From Hyphochytrium catenoides (lineage: Eukaryota > Protista > Hyphochytriomycota), in contig FLMG01000513.1 in NCBI GenBank assembly GCA_900088475.1, positions 1 through 60,021 on the forward strand: 60,021 nucleotides of DNA. The letters run 5' to 3'. This document shows, one piece after another, positions 5,014-45,331 of this stretch. Numbering within the stretch: the first letter of the stretch is position 1; the number at the start of each line of letters is the position of its first letter. The notes under the pieces were generated by a model that was not told where the DNA came from, made no database searches, and saw only the letters and a program-made list of their open reading frames with translations. The translations under genes and the position numbers were made by a program.

Positions 5014-7095
5014 ATGGCGCCCAACGATACTGACGAGACAATTGGACGCTCCCTTTCTGCTGAGTCTTCATGGAAGATGGCAGACTCCAACCTCTGGGTG
5101 GACAGCAAGACTGCTAAAGTGAGACCACATGAGCCTCCTGAGACCTATCCGGCCACAAGGAATCCCCTTTTCCACGTCTTCAAGGAAAACTTTGCCAGTG
5201 ATTATCCAATTCCTGTGACACCGTTCGGCACACCAGTGGAACACGCCAAGCCAGCGAAGACATGGTTACCTTCAGAACTTGATCCTGACGTGGAGCCAGG
5301 AGATCGTGTGTACAGGCTAGGAGCTTACTTCACCTGGACAAAATATCACCGGAAAGGCAGGTCGTTGGAGGCCTTGCGTCAGATAGGTGATGACCTTGCT
5401 GACGATGTATTAAACGAGGTACGCGTTCACCAAGAGTCACTGTCTCTCACTCTTGCTTTAGCTGAGCCTGCTGTTCACTGCAGACGGACATCAAACCCAT
5501 GGAAGACACATTGGAGACGATACTAAGACTGGGTTCAGGACAAAGTCCACCAGAAAGCGTGGTGCGCTTGCTGAGGCAGCTCAACTCCATTCCTGAGTGG
5601 TTGGAGGAGGATCGAATAAGACGTGGGCAGCAGTTCTTTATGAAGCGTTCCGGAGCCTGTCTAACCTCTCTTCTGTACTATTCGCTCATCGGCGGCTTCG
5701 CAGCGCCAAAGATCAACAAAGGTGAGCCAAGGGACACTTCGTTCAAGTGTTTACACCCAAAGCGTTTTAAGTCTCTAATGCTGATGGCCTCCTCAGTGCT
5801 AAACTCAACGGGGTATCTCAGTAAGAACAAAGACGCTACTTTTACCCGACTCTTGGAGACGCTCCAGATGATAGTTGATTGCATGGAAGAGGGCGCTTTG
5901 GTTCCTGGAGGCAGCGGATGGAAGTCCGTCATTCGGGTCAGTTTTCTTGTCCGTTTTGCATGGGCTTGTCAACTTTGATACCTCTGACACCCCCAAACCC
6001 TTGATAACAACTCTTCCTTGTGACAGGTGCGATTCCTGCACGCCAAAGTACGCCGTCGGCTGTTGCGGATGCCCCAATGGGACGTTGAACAGTGGGGCAT
6101 TCCGATTAATCAAGAGGACATGGCGGTCACTCAGATGGCATTCACAGTCATTATGATGGGAGGCGTGTCGGCCATGGGCATTCCAATCTCTCGACAAGAC
6201 GCGGAAGATTATTGTCATTTATGGCGCTACATTGGCTACCTTATAGGCGTCAAGGAGGAATATAATCCGAGTGTCTCCCTGGAAGTGGCCACCGCCTGGT
6301 CGGAATCGTCCGTAATGCACCTTGTGGAGCCAGACGCATCCGGCACACTCCTGGCGATCAACAATCTAGAGGCGGTCGCACACAAACCCCCTCATTGTAA
6401 GCCCATCGGTTCCACCTTTTCCCTTGACTACGCATTCCAGTCCGTGTGTTTCGACCATTTCTCCCCCGTTGCCTGTGATTGCCTCTTAGTGGGCTATTTT
6501 ATGGCCCTTTGTCTCCAGCCCGTATCTACCTGATCTCCGTAGGCTCTCCAACCCAAAGAGATAAGAATGTCTGGCTACTTTGGTGGAAATCCCTTTTCCT
6601 TTGAAGCTGCGTCACCTAATATGTTTCCTCGCTGCAGACCTGTCGCCGGAGTTCCATAGCGCGATGGCCAGATGGTTTTGCAACCCCTCCTTAAGCCATG
6701 GATTGGGCTTTCCCCAGTGCTCGAAAAGTAAAGCCATGGGAGCAAAGCTCTACCTCTTTCTCATTGCCTTGGGCGATAGAGTACTTGGGGACTTTCCTGT
6801 CCTTGGGCCCATTCTATGCAGCTCCAGACTCAGAAGGATAAGAAGGGGAATTGAAGTCTTGCTTGGGGGCAAAGCGACTAAATTTCAGATGAAGCACTCG
6901 CCAGGGACGGAGGGAAGTGAAGCAATTGAGGAGGACGGGGTCTTAACGCTCCAGCGTCTTCGGGAACTGCAGCGGTCCCCTACGTTGCGACTGCTTTCTA
7001 TCCTCCTGTTCATCGTTATGTTGCACAACCTTCGGAAGAGAAGATTCCGCTCCTATGTTCGCAGCTGGCTCCTAACAGTTACTGGCAGGGTGTAA
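5014..7095 (+). CDS. MpaB/rubber-oxygenase-like (DUF2236) ER-bound oxygenase with C-terminal TM
   Basis: Exons 5014-5418, 5484-5721, 5797-5936, 6027-6396 and 6638-7095 join in frame. Motifs GDDLAD, PEW..EDRIRRGQQFF, RLLETLQM, VRFLHAKVR, WGIPINQED, YCHLWRYIGYLIGV; hydrophobic C-terminal anchor. Confidence 0.88.
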
Positions 7096-7470: not shown

Positions 7471-10400
7471 CTAAAGCTCATCGTGTACGGAACCCTCTTC
7501 ACTCTTTTCTTTTGAATGGGTAATAGTCTCTTGCTTCAAACTGTCCTCCTTGTTCCACTGTCCATTTACAGTCTCCGGCCATGATAAATGCTGTGGCGCT
7601 TGGACTCCATGAAAGAACGGCTTGAAAGAAATTTCGTGGTTTGCACCTGAGGCCGCGGTGTCCCTGAGCCACTGATTGTAAGCCGTCTGCCACCCTGCTC
7701 CGTAATCTATTGTCAGCTCCTGTCCAGTCTTTATTGGTTGCAACGCTCTGAACCCAAGATACAATCTGCCCCCTTCGAGCTTGTGTTTACCAAGGTCCAA
7801 GATCTCTTTCTGGCTCTCAGGGGTCGTCCAGAAGTACTCCAACAAGGGTTTGGAGGCATGATTGTACAGCGCGCCGTAACCGAGGGGAAACACGGCGACT
7901 TCGCTTCCTTCCTTCACAAAAGCATAATTCAGGGAGTAGTGCAGTTGCAGATCACTCTTATGAGCTAACAACACTGGAACGACCTCCACGACCTCTCCAG
8001 CCCTAAAGTCGGCTGTAGCAAACACGCCACGACCTGCGCCAGCGATCCTTGACGGCTTCAATTCCAATTGTGGGCAGCCAAATAATGGCTCAGGAGGAGT
8101 GTTACCTAGAACGGGGTGGACTCCAGGCAAGCCTCTAGCATCCGCCCAAGCATCGCCAAAAGTGACCAGGAGTTCCTGTCCCTTGAGAATCCCAGGCTTC
8201 GTTGTTTTGAACAGAACATGGGGCGACCGGACAAACGGAAGAGCAAAACCGGAGGGATAGCTCGCATTACTAGGTAAGACGTTATCATTCACGTTCGGGC
8301 TTTCAGCTTCCATTTGGTAGAGCAGGTTCGATGCATCCAGAGAAGAAGAACCATGATTGACCATGACGCAATAACCCAGCATCAGCATCTGCTCGGTATC
8401 AGAGTGGTGCAGCACGTGATCCAGGAGTTCTGTATCCGAACACGCCGCGTATGGGACGAGGATGTTCGGACAGGAGGCAACCACCTCCCCTTCTCTCAGG
8501 TCTCTTCCCGCAAAGATACCTCGGTGTGCTCCTGGGATGCTGGATAGCCCCACATACATGCTGCAGTGAGGGCTGTAGCCAGGATCGTGGACCTCCTCCT
8601 CCATCCCTACCGCATACGTAGGCCACTCCAGTTCCGCAGGCACGCCGATTGTATGATAGAAATTTGGAGAGTCACAGCTGTCTGGCCCCGCGGGGACGCA
8701 ATTCCTTAGATAGGCCCGGTAGGTTTCCCATGCTTGCTCCCAATCTTTTCCATAAGTTATCAGTAGCTCTTCGCCAGCTGCAATGTCCCTAGAAGCCACA
8801 AAGGCTAAGTGTGGCAGCTCTGGAACAGAGTGAGAGAGTTTCATCTCCTGCAGATCAAACCACTGCAATCGAAGATTGTGTCCTGATAGATCATGATTGT
8901 AGAAGGCGCCAAAGCCTGCAGTCAAGACCGTGACTGGAGAGGAGCCCTTCCTAAAGACATGATTTTCCACTGTGGATCCCTTCAGGTGCTGATAGGGTAA
9001 GATACGGGTGGGAGCGATTTCAACGATTTCTCCTGCTCTAAAGGTTCTCTTGGAAAACACTCCGCGCCCTGCTCCAGGAATCGTGGAGGTGTTAAGGTAG
9101 ACTTGAGGGTAAGCAACAGCACGAGTGGTCGGTCTCTTAGGCTTTGCTTGTGAGACTTCTTCAGTTCCCTCGGCTCCAAGGTCACGGCTTCCAAACCAGT
9201 CATCTCCGTACGAAACAAAACCTTCTTGGTCCTTCTCCAACTCTGTCGTGGCCAGCATCACATAGTCCTTCTCCACCGAGAAGGGGAGGATAAGTCCTGT
9301 AGGGACCTCTGCTCCTGCTTGCCCTACTATTGCCTCTATAAAGCTTTCTCTAGACATTACATCCGACTCTACCAGAACATGCTGCAGGGTAGGCTTCTCC
9401 TGATGATTCCAGATCATGCAGAAGCCCAATGTGATGCAGACAGAGCCTTCAGAAGCCTCCCATACATTGTCAAGGAGTACATTTTTAGACACCGCTCTAT
9501 TGGGGGCCAGGATGGTTGGGCATCTCTCTACAGGCTCCCAGACGTCATAGTTCCGGCCAAGAAAAGCTCCTCGGCCAGCTCCAGGGATCGTAGAGTCATC
9601 AAGGTATAGCGAATGGTCTATCGTTGTGGGATCTGCTTCCACACGTCGATAAACAGTGGTGCTGTTTAGCCCCTTCACTCCACTCTCCGGCCACCTCTCA
9701 AGAAGTTCTGGAGGTGGCCTAATGGGACTAAAGAATTGCGGAATATCTTTTGACAAGGATGGCCCATTCGTCGCGGAATGCGACGCCAGGTTTGCTGTGT
9801 ATAATGCCCAATCGCGTTCCCAGTCTTTGCCATAGTCCAGTGTAAGCTCTTCTCCCTCTAGAATATCCCTCAGTGCTTTGAACTCTAGATAGTATGGGCC
9901 ATCGCCAGACGAAGCGCTGCTATCGGGAGTGTCATGATCAGGATGATGGGGCGTTGAAGCCCAGCGCACCACTAGGTTGGGATTCTTGGAGTCATGGTTG
10001 TACATAGTGGCATAGCCTAGAGCCAGCAAAGCAATGCTCTGCCCCTTACCTCTAAACACGTAATTGGCAGCCAGGGACCGTGCTATATGCATGTAGGGGA
10101 CCAACAGCACTAGCACCTTCTCCACTAGCTCGCCGGCTTTTTTGGGTTGAAGGAGAAACGCTCCACGTCCCGCCCCTGGTATCTTGGACCTGCCAATCCT
10201 CACTGGAGGCTTCTGGATGCCAAGCGAGCCATCCACAGGTGTACATTTGCCTAGCTCTGTAGCTTGCTCTCCTTCCTGACATCTTGAGCCTCGATTCTCC
10301 AGGCCCGTCAAGGGCTGAAGAGCTTCGATACCTCGATCCTTTAGCCAATCGGCCCCATAGCTGACATATAGTTCCTGTCCAGGTTCTATATCACGGTTCG

Positions 10401-10935
10401 CCACAAGGCGATGGTCTCCGTTCGTTGTGAAAGGATAGGGGAAGCCCTCTGGCAGCTCCTGACTCGTGCCCGGGCCTAGAATGTCTCCGTTGAACTCAAA
10501 CGGGAGCAGTGTCTCTGTGACATTCTGCACGAAGTGTGGCAGATTCTGTTGGGGCACTGCAGGTGGCATCCATAGATTATACAATGAGTTGTCTTGCTGA
10601 TGATTGTACACAGCGCAATAGCCGAAGCTCTTTGAATCATACGCGGTGTCATACGCCCATACATAGTCCATCATAGCGTTCGGCCGCGCAGCCCCCAAGG
10701 GAATTTTCACAGTCCAGCAGCTTTCAACCACTTGTTCAGCTTTGATTGCCTCGGCCGCGAAGACGCCCCTCCCAGCACCGGGAATGTTTGACTTATCTAC
10801 GAAAAGCCCCGGGAAAATTAGACTTCCGCTAGAGGGCCCAGAAAGACTGTTTTCTTGCTCGCCGGAGCTCCATGGCAAGCAATAGAGAGTGACGCAGAGG
10901 ACTGCGAGCCCATGGAGCACCGGTGACGAGGTCAT
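7471..10935 (-). CDS. Intronless secretory-pathway protein with six tandem SET domains, signal peptide and HDEL ER-retention signal
   Basis: Single 1154-aa ORF. N-terminal hydrophobic stretch VLHGLAVLCVTLYCLPWSSG. Six copies of S.I(P/A)GA(G/H)RG(V/A/I)F ... NH ... (G/D)(Q/E)E..(V/L/I).(Y/F)G..W. Ends ...SVHDEL*. Confidence 0.9.
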   Translation of the reverse strand: MTSSPVLHGLAVLCVTLYCLPWSSGEQENSLSGPSSGSLIFPGLFVDKSNIPGAGRGVFAAEAIKAEQVVESCWTVKIPLGAARPNAMMDYVWAYDTAYDSKSFGYCAVYNHQQDNSLYNLWMPPAVPQQNLPHFVQNVTETLLPFEFNGDILGPGTSQELPEGFPYPFTTNGDHRLVANRDIEPGQELYVSYGADWLKDRGIEALQPLTGLENRGSRCQEGEQATELGKCTPVDGSLGIQKPPVRIGRSKIPGAGRGAFLLQPKKAGELVEKVLVLLVPYMHIARSLAANYVFRGKGQSIALLALGYATMYNHDSKNPNLVVRWASTPHHPDHDTPDSSASSGDGPYYLEFKALRDILEGEELTLDYGKDWERDWALYTANLASHSATNGPSLSKDIPQFFSPIRPPPELLERWPESGVKGLNSTTVYRRVEADPTTIDHSLYLDDSTIPGAGRGAFLGRNYDVWEPVERCPTILAPNRAVSKNVLLDNVWEASEGSVCITLGFCMIWNHQEKPTLQHVLVESDVMSRESFIEAIVGQAGAEVPTGLILPFSVEKDYVMLATTELEKDQEGFVSYGDDWFGSRDLGAEGTEEVSQAKPKRPTTRAVAYPQVYLNTSTIPGAGRGVFSKRTFRAGEIVEIAPTRILPYQHLKGSTVENHVFRKGSSPVTVLTAGFGAFYNHDLSGHNLRLQWFDLQEMKLSHSVPELPHLAFVASRDIAAGEELLITYGKDWEQAWETYRAYLRNCVPAGPDSCDSPNFYHTIGVPAELEWPTYAVGMEEEVHDPGYSPHCSMYVGLSSIPGAHRGIFAGRDLREGEVVASCPNILVPYAACSDTELLDHVLHHSDTEQMLMLGYCVMVNHGSSSLDASNLLYQMEAESPNVNDNVLPSNASYPSGFALPFVRSPHVLFKTTKPGILKGQELLVTFGDAWADARGLPGVHPVLGNTPPEPLFGCPQLELKPSRIAGAGRGVFATADFRAGEVVEVVPVLLAHKSDLQLHYSLNYAFVKEGSEVAVFPLGYGALYNHASKPLLEYFWTTPESQKEILDLGKHKLEGGRLYLGFRALQPIKTGQELTIDYGAGWQTAYNQWLRDTAASGANHEISFKPFFHGVQAPQHLSWPETVNGQWNKEDSLKQETITHSKEKSEEGSVHDEL

Positions 10936-13067: not shown

Positions 13068-14665
13068 TCAAATGTAGCGCTCGGCAACAGTCAGAAGTTG
13101 TACAAGCTCGTTTGGACGTAGACAGTAAACAAACGAGCGCCCTTCCCCGATAGTCCAGAAGTCATATCCTCGTTCTGGTACCACAACTGAGGAAGTGTAG
13201 ATCCACGAGAGCAGTGCCTTGATAACGTTAGGCGGATCCTCTTGTGAAGATAATACAGAGTTCATGTTCTCCTTCATCGGAGACTTGAACATCACATCGA
13301 TGACGTCCGATGCAGACATGAGTATCGACTTGTGCGCCTTCACGCTAGTGCCATCCTGAAGGTGGATTGTCACCATCTGAGACTTGTTCAAAGATGAGAC
13401 AGAGACACGTAGTAGCGGCCAAGGAGGCCTTGCGTCGCGGTAGCCCGTTTCGATAGAACACAGCCGTTTGGTGAGGCCAGCTTCAACAAGGACAATGAGG
13501 TCACCATCGTTGTTAAAATGGAGCTGCCTGGCACACATATTCTCGACGTAAAACATCTGCCAGCGCCTGGATGTACCGCCGTAGTGGCCGACAGAACCCA
13601 ACCAGATATACGAACTAGAGCAAGAAGTTTTAGAACTATAGACGTATTCCCAGGCGTAGAGGTAGAACGAAGAAAGGAGGCGCTGGTGCCGGGGATAGCG
13701 TGCACGACCCAAGATGCTGTTCTCAAGGTGAGAGATATCCACTAAGACCTCATATTGGCGTGTCTCGCGAACCACACGAACGCAATCATAATTATGATGC
13801 AGGTCTTTTGCTCGGATCATAGCAAGGGTGTAAGACTTCTTTCTCAGAGGATATAAGGATACACCCTCATCCCGACTCGATTCCACGATGAGCTGCCTCA
13901 TATGACCTTGTACATGTGCAATCTCACGTGTACGCTTCGTCCTCAGGTTGATCTTGATGAGATAACCGTCTAACACCCAAAGTATAGACACAGGTCTGAT
14001 CTCTTATATCCGTGGCATTCATACAGCGATAAACCATGAATTAGCTGCCCAGGTTTGCTTTGGTACACTTTATGAGCACGCCTCCCATATATACCATGTA
14101 TTTCGTAGTGATTGTCTTCAGAAAAGTGTTCAAGGACGTAGATATCGCCATTGCGGTGGTTGACTTCCATTCCCACCGGTGAACTGAGCGTTCCCCGATC
14201 CTCTCTAGCGCCAGTATCTAAATTGACCTGCCAGAGGTGGAGGAACCTCGTCTCGTCGAGTTTGATCTGCCGTTCTCCAGAAGTAGGACAGTCCCATCCG
14301 GGTGCCACTTCACGTCAGTATATCTACCATCTGGAAGGCTAAGGTACTTACGATGACCATACGCCGGCATCTGGTCTTTGCACGAACCGTTGTCTGGAAG
14401 ATGAGAGACTGAATGCAGAGTCCGCAAGCTTCAGAAAGGATCTGATCCATAGTGATAAGCAACCAGGACCAGGAGGACATACATTCGCATCATACCAGTC
14501 GATTGGGGGTTCGTTCTGATGATTATATAAAATAATACCGTAAATAATGGGAGGATTCAGAGACATTAGAGGCTCTATTCCGAATGAACTGTGTTCGCGC
14601 AAAAAGCTTGGATCCTTTCGCCGCCGAAATTTCTTCTCACATGATGTCTCTTGGACTGATGACAT
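13068..14665 (-). pseudogene. Frameshifted gene: beta-propeller-like N-terminal region plus C-terminal BTB/POZ domain
   Basis: BTB motif VTIHLQDGTSVKAHKSILMSASDVIDVMFKSPMKE...IKALLSWIYT...QLLTVAERY. The upstream part is split over overlapping ORFs in different frames (14348-14665, 14218-14427, 13970-14308) with no obvious introns. The propeller call is weak. Confidence 0.6.
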
Positions 14666-43600: not shown

Positions 43601-45331
43601 CTCCTTGCTTCTCTAACGTCGGGCGGTCTCCGGGCGATACAGCTTGGCCGCCATGAACAGCACGCCGTGGCCATGTCAGCTAGAAGAGGGGAAATAGCGG
43701 GTCATATGTACCAAGTGGCCGCGCTAGAGGCTGTACCAACGGCCTGGCTAGCCCTAGCCCACCGCTATAGTAAGGGACAAGGAGTGGTGAAAGACCCCGA
43801 AGTAGCTGCACATTACTATTACTTGGCAGCACTTGAGTCTCAGCGTTTCTATCATACCACGGGCAAACAACCCCGTCATGAGATGCACCAGCTCTCTGAA
43901 AGCACGGAAGAAACCATAGAGATTGGACAGAAGGGCGATGATGATGAGCAAATCCAGTTCCTGACTCTACAGGCAGAACATGGGGACGTAGGAGCCATCC
44001 TCACACTAGGAGATTGGTACTACTGGGGCTCTCACGGCCTTCCTAGGGACCATGGGCGTGCCGCTCAGTACTTTTCAAGAGCCGCACAGCTGCAGAGCGA
44101 CGTTGGAAGGAGCTGCTTGGCTGGCATGTACCGGAGAGGAGAGGGCGTGGAGAGAGACGATTTGAAGGCAAAGGAACTATGGGAAGCAGCTGTCAATTCG
44201 TCGGATAACGTAAGAGGTTTGAACGGGCTTGGGCATCTATACTTCTACGGCGTGGAAGGGGTGATCGAGCAGAACCAAACTAAGGCCCTAGAGTACTTCC
44301 AGAGGGCAGCAGACAAGGGAGAGGAAGCGGACAGTATGTTTAACACGGCCACTTGCTACCAGCAAGGCATAGGAACAGCAAAGAACCTCACCGTCGCCCT
44401 ACATTACTTCAAGAGGGCAGCTGCTGAGTTTGCGCACTTTGACTCTGTGTTGGAGCTTGGAAAGATGTACCTCTTCGGCATCGGCGTCCAGCGTTCTCTG
44501 TCTGCAGCAACAGTCTATTTAAAGCACGCTGCAGAGCAGGGAGAGTGGGGCGGGCTCCTGAGGGAAGGCTTCGACTACTATATCAAGAGGAATATCAACG
44601 CTGCGGTCCTTCGGTATATAGAGGCAGCAGAGTACGGATACACGGTAGCAGAGGGCAATGTCGCCTTTCTAGCGAACAAGAAGATCTCTGATCCTTCTAC
44701 TCTCTTTCAACAGAAGAGTAGAGGGAGAGACGCCGAAGCGGTTGACAGCGATGAGAGTAACGGAGAAAAGCTTGGCCGAGATCGAGAAGGATCAAAGCGC
44801 CAGAGTGAGCATCTGGCATTCAACTACTTGCTGAAAGCTGCAAACAACGGAGACACAGAGGCACTTATCCCGCTGGGAGACATATTTTACTATGGGAAAG
44901 CAGGCGTTGCCATCGACTATGCACGCGCTCTCTGGTGGTACAGCCGCGCCAGTGCTGCTGGCGTGTCTCAAGGAGCCTTCTACGTTGCCTCAATGTACGA
45001 AAGCGGTCAAGGAGTCGAAAAATCGCTTAATCGAGCTGTGCGGTACTATCAGCGCAGTAGAGAGCTGGATGGGTCACTTCCGAATCGTCTCGCTGTGCAG
45101 CTTGCATTGGTCAGGATGGAATTCTGTGAGACCCTGGAAGTCCAGACCGGATGGAAGTGCTTTGGCCAGGATGGGGCTAAGGGAAGTGGTCCTCGCCCAC
45201 AAAGTAATGGAAGAGGAGGAGAGACAACAGACGTGGACAGTGAAACAGTAGGCATCCTGACACTGACGGCTGTGTTGATGACGCTGCTCTACCTCCGAGG
45301 ACGTATGGGTGTCAGGCACCAGGAAGGCTAG
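40633..45331 (+). CDS. SEL1L3/Hrd3-like type I membrane protein: signal peptide, LamG/ConA-like domain, Sel1 repeats, C-terminal TM (multi-exon)
   Basis: Signal peptide. LamG-like motifs WSMAFWVFL, PGRWTHLAFTF, LFVDGRLD, LWIGG...GFIANLRVF. Many Sel1 repeats (LGDWYYWG, ALEYFQRAA, ALWWYSRAS). TM VGILTLTAVLMTLLYL. Confidence 0.82.

Follow-up and report, generated by a model that had tools for sequence, protein, structure and literature searches.

A predicted ER-resident protein with three tandem pairs of minimal SET domains in Hyphochytrium catenoides, and its candidate secretory family in stramenopiles

The stretch of DNA analysed here (hereafter the window) comprises 60,021 nucleotides of contig FLMG01000513.1 of the hyphochytrid Hyphochytrium catenoides, and the gene under consideration occupies positions 7471..10935 on its minus strand as an uninterrupted frame of 1154 codons plus stop, starting with ATG and ending in ...SVHDEL. 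We estimate that, at about 50% GC, 1154 sense codons in a row would arise by chance with a probability near 1e-24, and an exact-sequence look-up with the protein retrieved none on record. The first-pass annotation had described an intronless ORF of this length among intron-rich neighbours, and both parts of the description hold: a single frame stays open from ATG to stop, and the genes on either side appear as several short ORF fragments in differing frames, which fits multi-exon genes (the average reported for the H. catenoides genome is 3.64 introns per gene). Upstream of the ATG the open frame reaches just 12 codons before an in-frame stop is encountered. The reads that cover the locus are from DNA runs, the gene model and its 5' end being set from genomic DNA, and over 5.6 kb around the gene they contain allelic SNPs alone and no splice joints. 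Those within the CDS are heterozygous, 13 of them synonymous and 9 not (pN/pS about 0.21); the frame is unbroken and evolves under purifying selection. The GC content of the gene is 51-53%, compared to 47-53% across the window. The features of the gene are as follows.

7471..10935, minus strand: six-SET CDS, intronless, 1154 aa plus stop (ORF translation)
10861..10935, minus strand: signal-peptide-like N-terminus, residues 1-25, with h-region 6-20 and S-S-G, then E26 (hydropathy heuristic)
10327..10812, minus strand: SET A1, aa 42-203 (Pfam 31 bits; family A profile 99 bits; GAGRG, NH, SYG..W)
9772..10224, minus strand: SET B1, aa 238-388 (Pfam 32 bits; family B profile 118 bits)
9688..9735, minus strand: post-B tail motif 1, FFS..P..WP type (motif position)
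9178..9618, minus strand: SET A2, aa 440-586 (no score with Pfam alone; family A profile 106 bits; modelled fold)
8692..9126, minus strand: SET B2, aa 604-748 (Pfam 43 bits; match to vSET 1n3j; modelled fold)
8620..8661, minus strand: post-B tail motif 2, FYH..VP..WP (motif position; pLDDT about 96 in the model of unit 2)
8128..8568, minus strand: SET A3, aa 790-936, GAHRG and Phe for Tyr (Pfam 18 bits, below cut-off; family A profile 102 bits)
7642..8082, minus strand: SET B3, aa 952-1098 (Pfam 45 bits; modelled fold)
7576..7617, minus strand: post-B tail motif 3, FFH..AP..WP (motif position)
7474..7485, minus strand: C-terminal HDEL ER-retrieval tetrapeptide, after an acidic/polar spacer (translation)

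The six compact SET domains carry GA[GH]RG motifs at nucleotides 10765-10779, 10162-10176, 9568-9582, 9061-9075, 8518-8532 and 8026-8040, matching all six positions proposed in the first-pass annotation, but they are arranged as three A-B pairs, i.e., an (A-B)x3 layout, and not as six equal repeats. A conserved tail, F-[FY]-H..P..WP, comes after every A-B unit, and pairwise identities among the domains are 28-33% for A-A, 34-40% for B-B and 23-30% for A-B comparisons. While the NH and [YF]G..W motifs occur in all six, the complete SAM-binding and catalytic set (GxG, NH, ELxxxY(G)) is kept in five, and the earlier statement that each domain has GAGRG-type, NH and ELxxxYG.xW-type motifs stands for these five. 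The exception is the fifth domain, A3, where GAHRG costs one Gly of the GxG and Phe takes the place of the catalytic Tyr, the sole Tyr-to-Phe change among 76 aligned units. Searched against the whole protein, the Pfam SET profile (PF00856) scored 143 bits (E 4.2e-42) in 5 stretches. Repeat by repeat, four domains exceeded the gathering score on their own (31, 32, 43 and 45 bits), domain 5 reached 18 bits and domain 3 gave no score, and with family-specific A and B profiles all six scored 99-123 bits. The 16 Cys of the protein are dispersed and form no CxC-type cluster, as expected from the earlier claim that pre- and post-SET zinc clusters are absent, and domain and motif inspection did not reveal a chromatin-reader, pre-SET or post-SET domain.

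Units 2 and 3 were modelled confidently with AF2 (pLDDT 88.3 and 86.8, pTM 0.88 and 0.87), and the SET fold that had been anticipated for the repeats is borne out for the modelled A2, B2 and B3, whose best PDB matches are minimal SETs. A2 matched PFL0690c (4rz0) with Z 10.2 and rmsd 2.0 over 110 aa, and vSET with Z 8.9; B2 matched Schizosaccharomyces pombe Set7 with Z 8.3; B3 matched Set7 with Z 12.4 and vSET with Z 12.0 at 31% identity. The model of A3 is also confident and has a secondary-structure order identical to that of A2; the SET assignment of A1, B1 and A3 comes from homology and model layout only. The best PDB sequence match, obtained with B2, was likewise vSET (1n3j, E 6e-6). As modelled, the A-B unit brings two minimal SET domains compactly together, both zinc-free and of the vSET, Set7 and PFL0690c kind. 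These best sequence and structure matches, i.e., PBCV-1 vSET (1n3j/3kma), S. pombe Set7 (5h6z) and Plasmodium falciparum PFL0690c (4rz0), share with the H. catenoides domains a zinc-free core of about 110-120 residues, but they are single-domain nuclear histone enzymes, whereas the domains described here are paired, tripled and accompanied by predicted secretory and ER signals. Both vSET and Set7 act as homodimers, and by analogy the fused A-B pair may imitate such a dimer.

A paralogue with 46% identity to the six-SET protein is present in the H. catenoides genome, and both the GAHRG and the Phe-for-Tyr of A3 are shared with it. In phylogenetic analysis all six units and those of the paralogue make up a single clade (SH-aLRT 100), with unit-by-unit pairing supported at 98-100, and the triplication of the A-B unit is lineage-specific. 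The paralogue has one clear intron, at a site that is uninterrupted in the six-SET gene. Its E/R/K-rich inserts were considered as further introns and rejected, no in-frame GT..AG boundaries being found. The lack of introns in the six-SET gene, set against the genome average, the resemblance of its domains to viral and bacterial minimal SETs, and the intron of the paralogue could together be taken to indicate a recent viral or bacterial gene acquired horizontally, or a processed retrocopy in decay. We regard such an origin as most improbable: the units share a strongly supported clade with those of the paralogue, the nearest relatives outside H. catenoides are proteins of stramenopile eukaryotes, the GC content resembles that of the surroundings, and the SNPs are heterozygous, with the low pN/pS given above. 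Moreover, relatives are commonly single ORFs as well, the paralogue itself has just the one intron, and a single-unit scan of viral contigs (IMG/VR), sensitive to close relatives only, found no close viral relative. The horizontal transfer that the first-pass annotation had entertained is thus not upheld, and retroposition, its other suggestion for the missing introns, is conceivable but gains nothing from a paralogue with a single intron and from the many single-ORF relatives.

An A-B unit profile search recovered 423 cluster representatives at E<=1e-30, with named members in diatoms (including Seminavis and Cyclotella) and chrysophytes. The family layout consists of an A-type SET, a B-type SET and a F-[RFY]-H..P..W tail, which the H. 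catenoides protein contains three times; of the compact A-B proteins from chrysophytes and metagenomic eukaryotes, about 15-20% of representatives have two units and the others one. Across the 76 aligned units, which share <35% identity, the GxG, N-H, Y-G and W positions are near invariant in A and in B, as are F, I and P of the tail motif across the family, and the A-B unit model superposes on a Bacillariophyta protein cluster with a TM of 0.79 over 320 residues. An ESM Atlas feature search with the whole six-SET protein returned generic single-SET clusters only.

SET proteins targeted to the ER have been proposed in diatoms under the name "BacSET" (Nemoto et al. 2020, Mar Biotechnol 22:551-563, as cited in bioRxiv 10.1101/2020.11.23.393678 and PMC11151724), as the first-pass annotation had correctly stated; the family definition used here follows those citing papers. 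The diatom members are true homologues, both by sequence and by the structure of the two-domain unit. Like the H. catenoides protein, diatom BacSETs have a signal-like leader, A-type and B-type SETs and a tail (F-R-H..I.P..W), and the role proposed for both is methylation in the secretory pathway. They differ in their length of about 600 aa, in the long insert that separates B from the tail, and in the -EL end that most of them lack, against three compact units and HDEL in H. catenoides, whose genome, searched for a silicon transporter (SIT), gave no match. The family extends beyond Bacillariophyceae, as H. catenoides and chrysophytes both carry A-B proteins, and it is not diatom-specific given its occurrence in a hyphochytrid genome without a silicon transporter match. 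Owing to this genome and to the chrysophyte members, we place the protein in the wider A-B family and not among BacSETs in the strict sense. The family is a large one among stramenopiles that has received little study, and its likely targets are cargo of the secretory pathway, not histones.

The targeting signals of the six-SET protein point to the secretory pathway. Residues 6-20 are its sole strongly hydrophobic stretch (KD19 1.5), the small residues S-S-G come next, and no TM-like segment lies past the N-terminus; by this hydropathy heuristic, the leader noted earlier is a putative signal peptide. The terminal HDEL, also noted earlier, is the tag of H. catenoides BiP (C3024), which has a signal peptide as well, and it is identical in the paralogue, where the ~30 residues before the tetrapeptide are not conserved. 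A GRP170-like protein of the same genome (C4018) ends in KEEL, and an ERD2 receptor gene was found (G000:C3328). Family-wide, a C-terminal -EL terminates 41 of 149 representatives against a dipeptide background of 0.7% (P about 1e-51); among compact A-B members the share is 37 of 115 (32%). A strong hydrophobic leader occurs in 86 of 141 Met-starting members. Thus, the six-SET protein probably resides in the ER lumen in soluble form. Given that histone methyltransferases are its best PDB relatives and that the 5' end is known from genomic DNA alone, it might be supposed that this is a nuclear or cytosolic histone-type enzyme with a coincidental or mis-annotated hydrophobic N-terminus and HDEL. 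We consider this very unlikely, as the HDEL is kept in the paralogue inside an otherwise unconserved tail, leaders and xxEL ends are enriched throughout the family, the in-frame stop lies 12 codons ahead of the ATG, and chromatin-reader, pre-SET and post-SET domains were not found.

We infer, with a probability of roughly 60%, that this selectively maintained gene encodes an ER-lumenal (A-B)x3 SET protein that methylates lysines of secretory-pathway proteins using imported SAM, its localisation, catalysis, substrate and SAM route being read from sequence and models. The N-terminal signal peptide would bring the protein into the ER and HDEL would ensure its retrieval by ERD2; the body of the protein would be an ancient two-SET unit (A, B and conserved tail) in three tandem copies, transferring methyl groups from SAM to the lysine epsilon-amines of proteins in the secretory pathway with up to five active sites per chain. 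Lysine methylation is the most likely activity because five of the six domains retain the full SAM-binding and catalytic motifs. Counting against this reading are A3, which has neither the catalytic Tyr nor one Gly of the GxG, and the family-conserved Cys that precede A and B domains, which are mostly missing from the H. catenoides protein.

The degenerate state of A3, conserved in the paralogue, could alternatively mark a catalytically silent SET-fold ER resident that binds Lys-rich cargo or acts on it in a chaperone-like manner, and the accessible literature (Nemoto et al. 2020 through the papers citing it) contains no biochemical evidence of enzymatic activity for A-B family members. Such a protein would still have every SAM and catalytic motif in five of six domains, and the near invariance of these positions over 76 units of <35% identity is hard to explain without catalysis, which makes a silent role quite improbable. 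A lumenal SET enzyme acting on long-chain polyamines, other amines or small molecules in place of protein lysines is rather unlikely, though it has some precedent: small-molecule SET-fold enzymes exist, the BurB-SMM-SAM entry 9l4v being among our structural matches (Z 7.5), and PMC11151724 describes the diatom members as suggested regulators of wall proteins as well as long-chain polyamines. However, the catalytic Tyr, NH and lysine-channel motifs are of the protein-lysine SET type, protein KMTs are the best structural matches, and no context of polyamine synthesis was seen around the gene.

For methylation of protein lysines in the lumen, SAM would have to be imported, a need that the first-pass annotation had pointed out and for which MFS_5 transporters (plant GoSAMT1-3, Caenorhabditis elegans SAMT1) set the precedent in the secretory pathway. 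One MFS_5 (GoSAMT-family) gene is present in the H. catenoides genome (G000:C2211), and its product is the candidate importer. Like the system proposed here, the known MFS_5-dependent ones carry out SAM-dependent methylation in the lumen and rely on the import of SAM, but their known lumenal enzymes methylate glycans and are not SET-fold, and the connection of MFS_5 to the six-SET protein is a proposal only.

No silica structures are known from H. catenoides, although silica formation was the setting in which the A-B family was originally proposed, and this mismatch also counts against our preferred reading. Owing to this and to the lack of a SIT gene match, wall or scale proteins as substrate of the H. 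catenoides enzyme are speculation.

SET enzymes are textbook chromatin writers, and lysine methylation occurs on secreted proteins too, e.g., diatom silaffins. Full-text literature searches retrieved nothing relevant on ER-lumenal SET lysine methyltransferases and, in the accessible literature, no demonstrated enzymes of silaffin methylation, for which diatom SET proteins are candidates. The present analysis unties this candidate secretory SET family from diatoms and silica, and identifies its basic unit as a conserved SET pair, with many members bearing ER-retrieval signals. We tentatively postulate, as a scenario that is possible rather than probable, that lumenal lysine methylation by fused minimal-SET pairs could be an old and widespread stramenopile pathway independent of silica, in which the A-B unit would be a covalent vSET-type dimer with two sites, the compact members would be xxEL-retrieved ER residents, and the hyphochytrid protein would be a five-to-six-site 'assembly line' fed by MFS_5. 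The compact units of 350 aa are single ORFs, hence directly expressible and assayable, and they offer a direct route to ask whether the stramenopile ER lumen hosts protein methylation and how SAM enters it. Compact A-B proteins of chrysophytes (Pedospumella, Paraphysomonas, Mallomonas) and of many metagenomic eukaryotes match the A-B-tail unit over its full length (about 350-450 aa), have a hydrophobic leader and frequently end in xxEL (FDEL in Mallomonas annulata, KPEL in Paraphysomonas), with one unit, sometimes two, where the H. catenoides protein has three.

The gene on the minus strand reads without interruption into a terminal HDEL beside intron-rich neighbors, as the first-pass annotation had described, and six glycine-rich motifs lie where it had placed them:

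7471-10935, minus strand: predicted coding sequence of the SET protein, uninterrupted, 1154 codons, ATG start, end ...SVHDEL
10765-10779, 10162-10176, 9568-9582, 9061-9075, 8518-8532 and 8026-8040, minus strand: six GA[GH]RG motifs (motif search)

Upstream of the ATG the frame stays open for just 12 codons (open frame 1166 aa in total). Downstream of each GA[GH]RG come an NH motif and a [YF]G..W motif (6/6 domains), and the 16 cysteines are scattered, so that pre- and post-SET zinc clusters are lacking, as had also been claimed. Pfam SET matches the whole protein in five stretches (E 4.2e-42, 143 bits). The earlier picture of six SET repeats stands as to number, since family-specific A and B profiles (trained on 76 units, three of them from the SET protein itself) score 99-123 bits for all six domains, but the domains are unequal and alternate between two types (A1, B1, A2, B2, A3, B3); taken singly, domains 1, 2, 4 and 6 exceed the curated Pfam cut-off (31, 32, 43 and 45 bits), whereas domain 5 (A3) reaches 18 bits and domain 3 (A2) has no score. 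Identity is 28-33% among A-type domains (1, 3, 5), 34-40% among B-type domains (2, 4, 6) and 23-30% between the types; A domains carry a G-F/L-x-L-P-F insert, and downstream of each B domain, after a helix, comes a tail motif F-[FY]-[SH]..P..WP (aa 401-416, 759-772 and 1107-1120). From these identities and tails we read the layout as putative signal, (A-B-tail) x3, acidic spacer and HDEL. Residues 6-20, followed by S-S-G, are the sole strongly hydrophobic segment, and the predicted mature protein has ~124 kDa and a pI of 5.2.

The A-B-tail unit is the building block of a large family. When 1.84 billion representatives were screened with a profile built from six A-B units, 7069 proteins passed E<=1e-3 and 423 passed E<=1e-30. 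Most are ~350-450 aa long and align with the whole unit from about residue 20-35 on. Among 212 collected proteins, 142 have the architecture AB and ~25 ABAB, while ABABAB is limited to the SET protein and the paralogue described below. P0029 carries ABABA in truncated form, and a 2237-aa Epithemia model resembles an array of three long units. Named members come from diatoms (Seminavis robusta, Cyclotella cf. meneghiniana, Epithemia clementina) and chrysophytes (Pedospumella encystans, Paraphysomonas, two from Mallomonas). In an ESM Atlas structure search the whole unit aligned over 320 residues (TM 0.79) with a 610-aa cluster of eukaryotic members (100%), predominantly Bacillariophyta; bacterial SET clusters matched one domain of the unit only. 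The closest outside relative, P0001 (L001:5815-8277, a JGI metagenome contig), has two units and ends in RSEL; it was called from an internal Met, and the frame upstream is open to a Met with a hydrophobic, signal-like leader. The diatom two-SET protein P0016 (Seminavis robusta, NCBI/UniRef) is labelled 'Guanylate cyclase', probably an annotation error, and its recorded domain is SET only.

Conservation of SET motif residues in the 76-unit alignment (A domain; B domain)
GxG glycines: 69/76 and 74/76; 73/76 and 75/76
Asn of NH: 76/76; 76/76
His of NH: 68/76; 72/76
Tyr-Gly: 75/76 and 73/76; 76/76 and 76/76
Trp: 74/76; 76/76

Judged by this conservation, both domains look catalytic family-wide, which speaks against the rival reading of the SET protein as a pseudoenzyme. 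Domain A3 speaks for that rival, as it reads GAHRG and has Phe at the catalytic Tyr position, the sole Tyr-to-Phe and one of two Gly-to-His changes among the 76 aligned units. Elsewhere, the Cys that family members have ~12 residues N-terminal to each GxG (conservation 86% and 97%) is mostly lost in the SET protein. Two Cys in the family C-terminal region, seven columns apart (762 and 769 of the alignment named A3), occur together in 30 units, are both missing from 41 and occur singly in 5, a co-occurrence that suggests a disulfide.

AlphaFold2 models of units 2 and 3, built from the 76 unit sequences, gave pLDDT 88.3 and 86.8 and pTM 0.88 and 0.87, respectively, values that for a two-domain chain point to a confidently packed A-B pair. 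The SET fold proposed earlier was borne out for A2, B2 and B3 (Z 8.3-12.4), and the top Foldseek ranks were the minimal zinc-free enzymes PFL0690c, vSET and S. pombe Set7:

A2 model (residues 4-146): PFL0690c 4rz0, Z 10.2, rmsd 2.0, 110/110 residues; vSET 3kma, Z 8.9, rmsd 1.9
B2 model (residues 170-336): S. pombe Set7, Z 8.3
B3 model: S. pombe Set7, Z 12.4; vSET, Z 12.0, 31% identity

PDB matches for unit 3 all came from B3, which filled the list; A3 has the secondary-structure order of A2 with pLDDT >90 along most of its length. The tail motif of unit 2 is modeled at pLDDT ~96.

Where the protein would act is indicated by its ends. The host assembly contains the KDEL receptor gene ERD2 and a BiP orthologue (G000:C3024; L013/L018) with signal peptide and HDEL end, and HDEL is therefore the host's own ER-retrieval signal; with a GRP170-like Hsp70 (G000:C4018; L016; signal peptide, KEEL end), at least two retrieval variants are in use. 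The cytosolic Hsp70 ends in EEVD. Across the family, 41 of 149 representatives end in -EL (11 DEL, 8 EEL, 4 NEL, 4 SEL, others; dipeptide frequency 0.74%, binomial P ~1e-51), including 37/115 compact members, and among the 141 members that start with Met, 86 are strongly hydrophobic over a stretch within the first 40 residues. Ends in -EL are mostly absent from diatom long forms, whereas the SET protein and its paralogue end in HDEL. It is against these ends that a non-lumenal histone enzyme, a rival reading suggested by the histone methyltransferases among the best PDB relatives, has to be weighed.

A 3.5-kb single exon is unusual for this genome; both flanking genes consist of short ORF pieces in several frames, giving the appearance of multi-exon genes. 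Horizontal transfer or retroposition had been suggested as possible reasons for the lack of introns. A transferred gene or a decaying retrocopy is the corresponding rival reading, and of the rivals horizontal transfer is the weakest. The assembly (61.0 Mb, 4759 sequences) holds one other family member, on G000:C1919, collinear across six domains (46% identity over 1147 aligned residues) and sharing GAHRG and Phe in A3; the ~30 residues before its HDEL are not conserved. Its several E/R/K-rich inserts yielded no splice boundaries, and one intron was found:

L008:6651-7082 (G000:C1919): paralogue intron, 432 nt, canonical GTAAGT...CAG, within domain 6

This CT-rich intron contains no stop and has a length divisible by three, so that six-frame reading yields a false 1552-aa frame in which SET domain 6 is interrupted by a long S/L/F-rich insert. 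In a quick-search IQ-TREE phylogeny the six units of both proteins form one clade (SH-aLRT 100), which argues against horizontal transfer, and pair U1/U1, U2/U2 and U3/U3 (98-100), placing the triplication in this lineage prior to gene duplication; other multi-unit proteins cluster by protein, i.e., units were duplicated independently and recurrently elsewhere. A search for sequencing runs containing the locus yielded no RNA run. Source-organism DNA runs from 2011 and 2017 cover the locus with heterozygous variants, 22 of which are listed in the ORF (13 synonymous, 9 non-synonymous; 814 and 2648 sites; pN/pS ~0.21), arguing against both transfer and decay. The Hyphochytrium catenoides assembly, for which a GAIIx and a HiSeq data set were combined, is diploid with abundant SNPs (PMC5795050).

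The most economical reading of the sequence is a soluble ER-lumenal SAM-dependent N-methyltransferase, in which up to five predicted active sites would methylate lysines of secretory cargo; non-protein amines are the rival substrates. SAM would have to be imported into the lumen. The plant GoSAMTs and C. elegans SAMT1, MFS_5 proteins, set a precedent (bioRxiv 10.1101/2021.07.06.451061), and the single host MFS_5 gene (PF05631; G000:C2211:5609-7196; L019/L020; five collinear exon matches) is by analogy a candidate importer, as a lead only. The kind of protein is known, yet still hypothetical: the ER-targeted diatom SET proteins mentioned earlier were indeed proposed by Nemoto et al. 2020, according to citing papers (bioRxiv 10.1101/2020.11.23.393678, PMC11151724). 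In the accessible literature we found no functional study of them and no description of the two-SET unit as building block, of members beyond diatoms (chrysophytes, hyphochytrid), of family-wide xxEL ends or of the triplicated HDEL form. A search of the host assembly for a silicon transporter found none.

Other genes in the window are as follows:

5014-7095, plus strand: gene in several exons, encoding the catalytic domain of an MpaB/Lcp-type 'ER-bound oxygenase' (PF09995, E 6e-10) and converging on the SET gene with a gap of ~375 nt
13068-13991, minus strand: ORF the size of an exon, encoding a BTB/POZ domain (E 8.5e-11); the multi-exon gene to which it belongs lies upstream of the SET gene
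43667-45331, plus strand: 554-aa ORF, strong match to Sel1 repeats (PF08238, E 1.9e-49)
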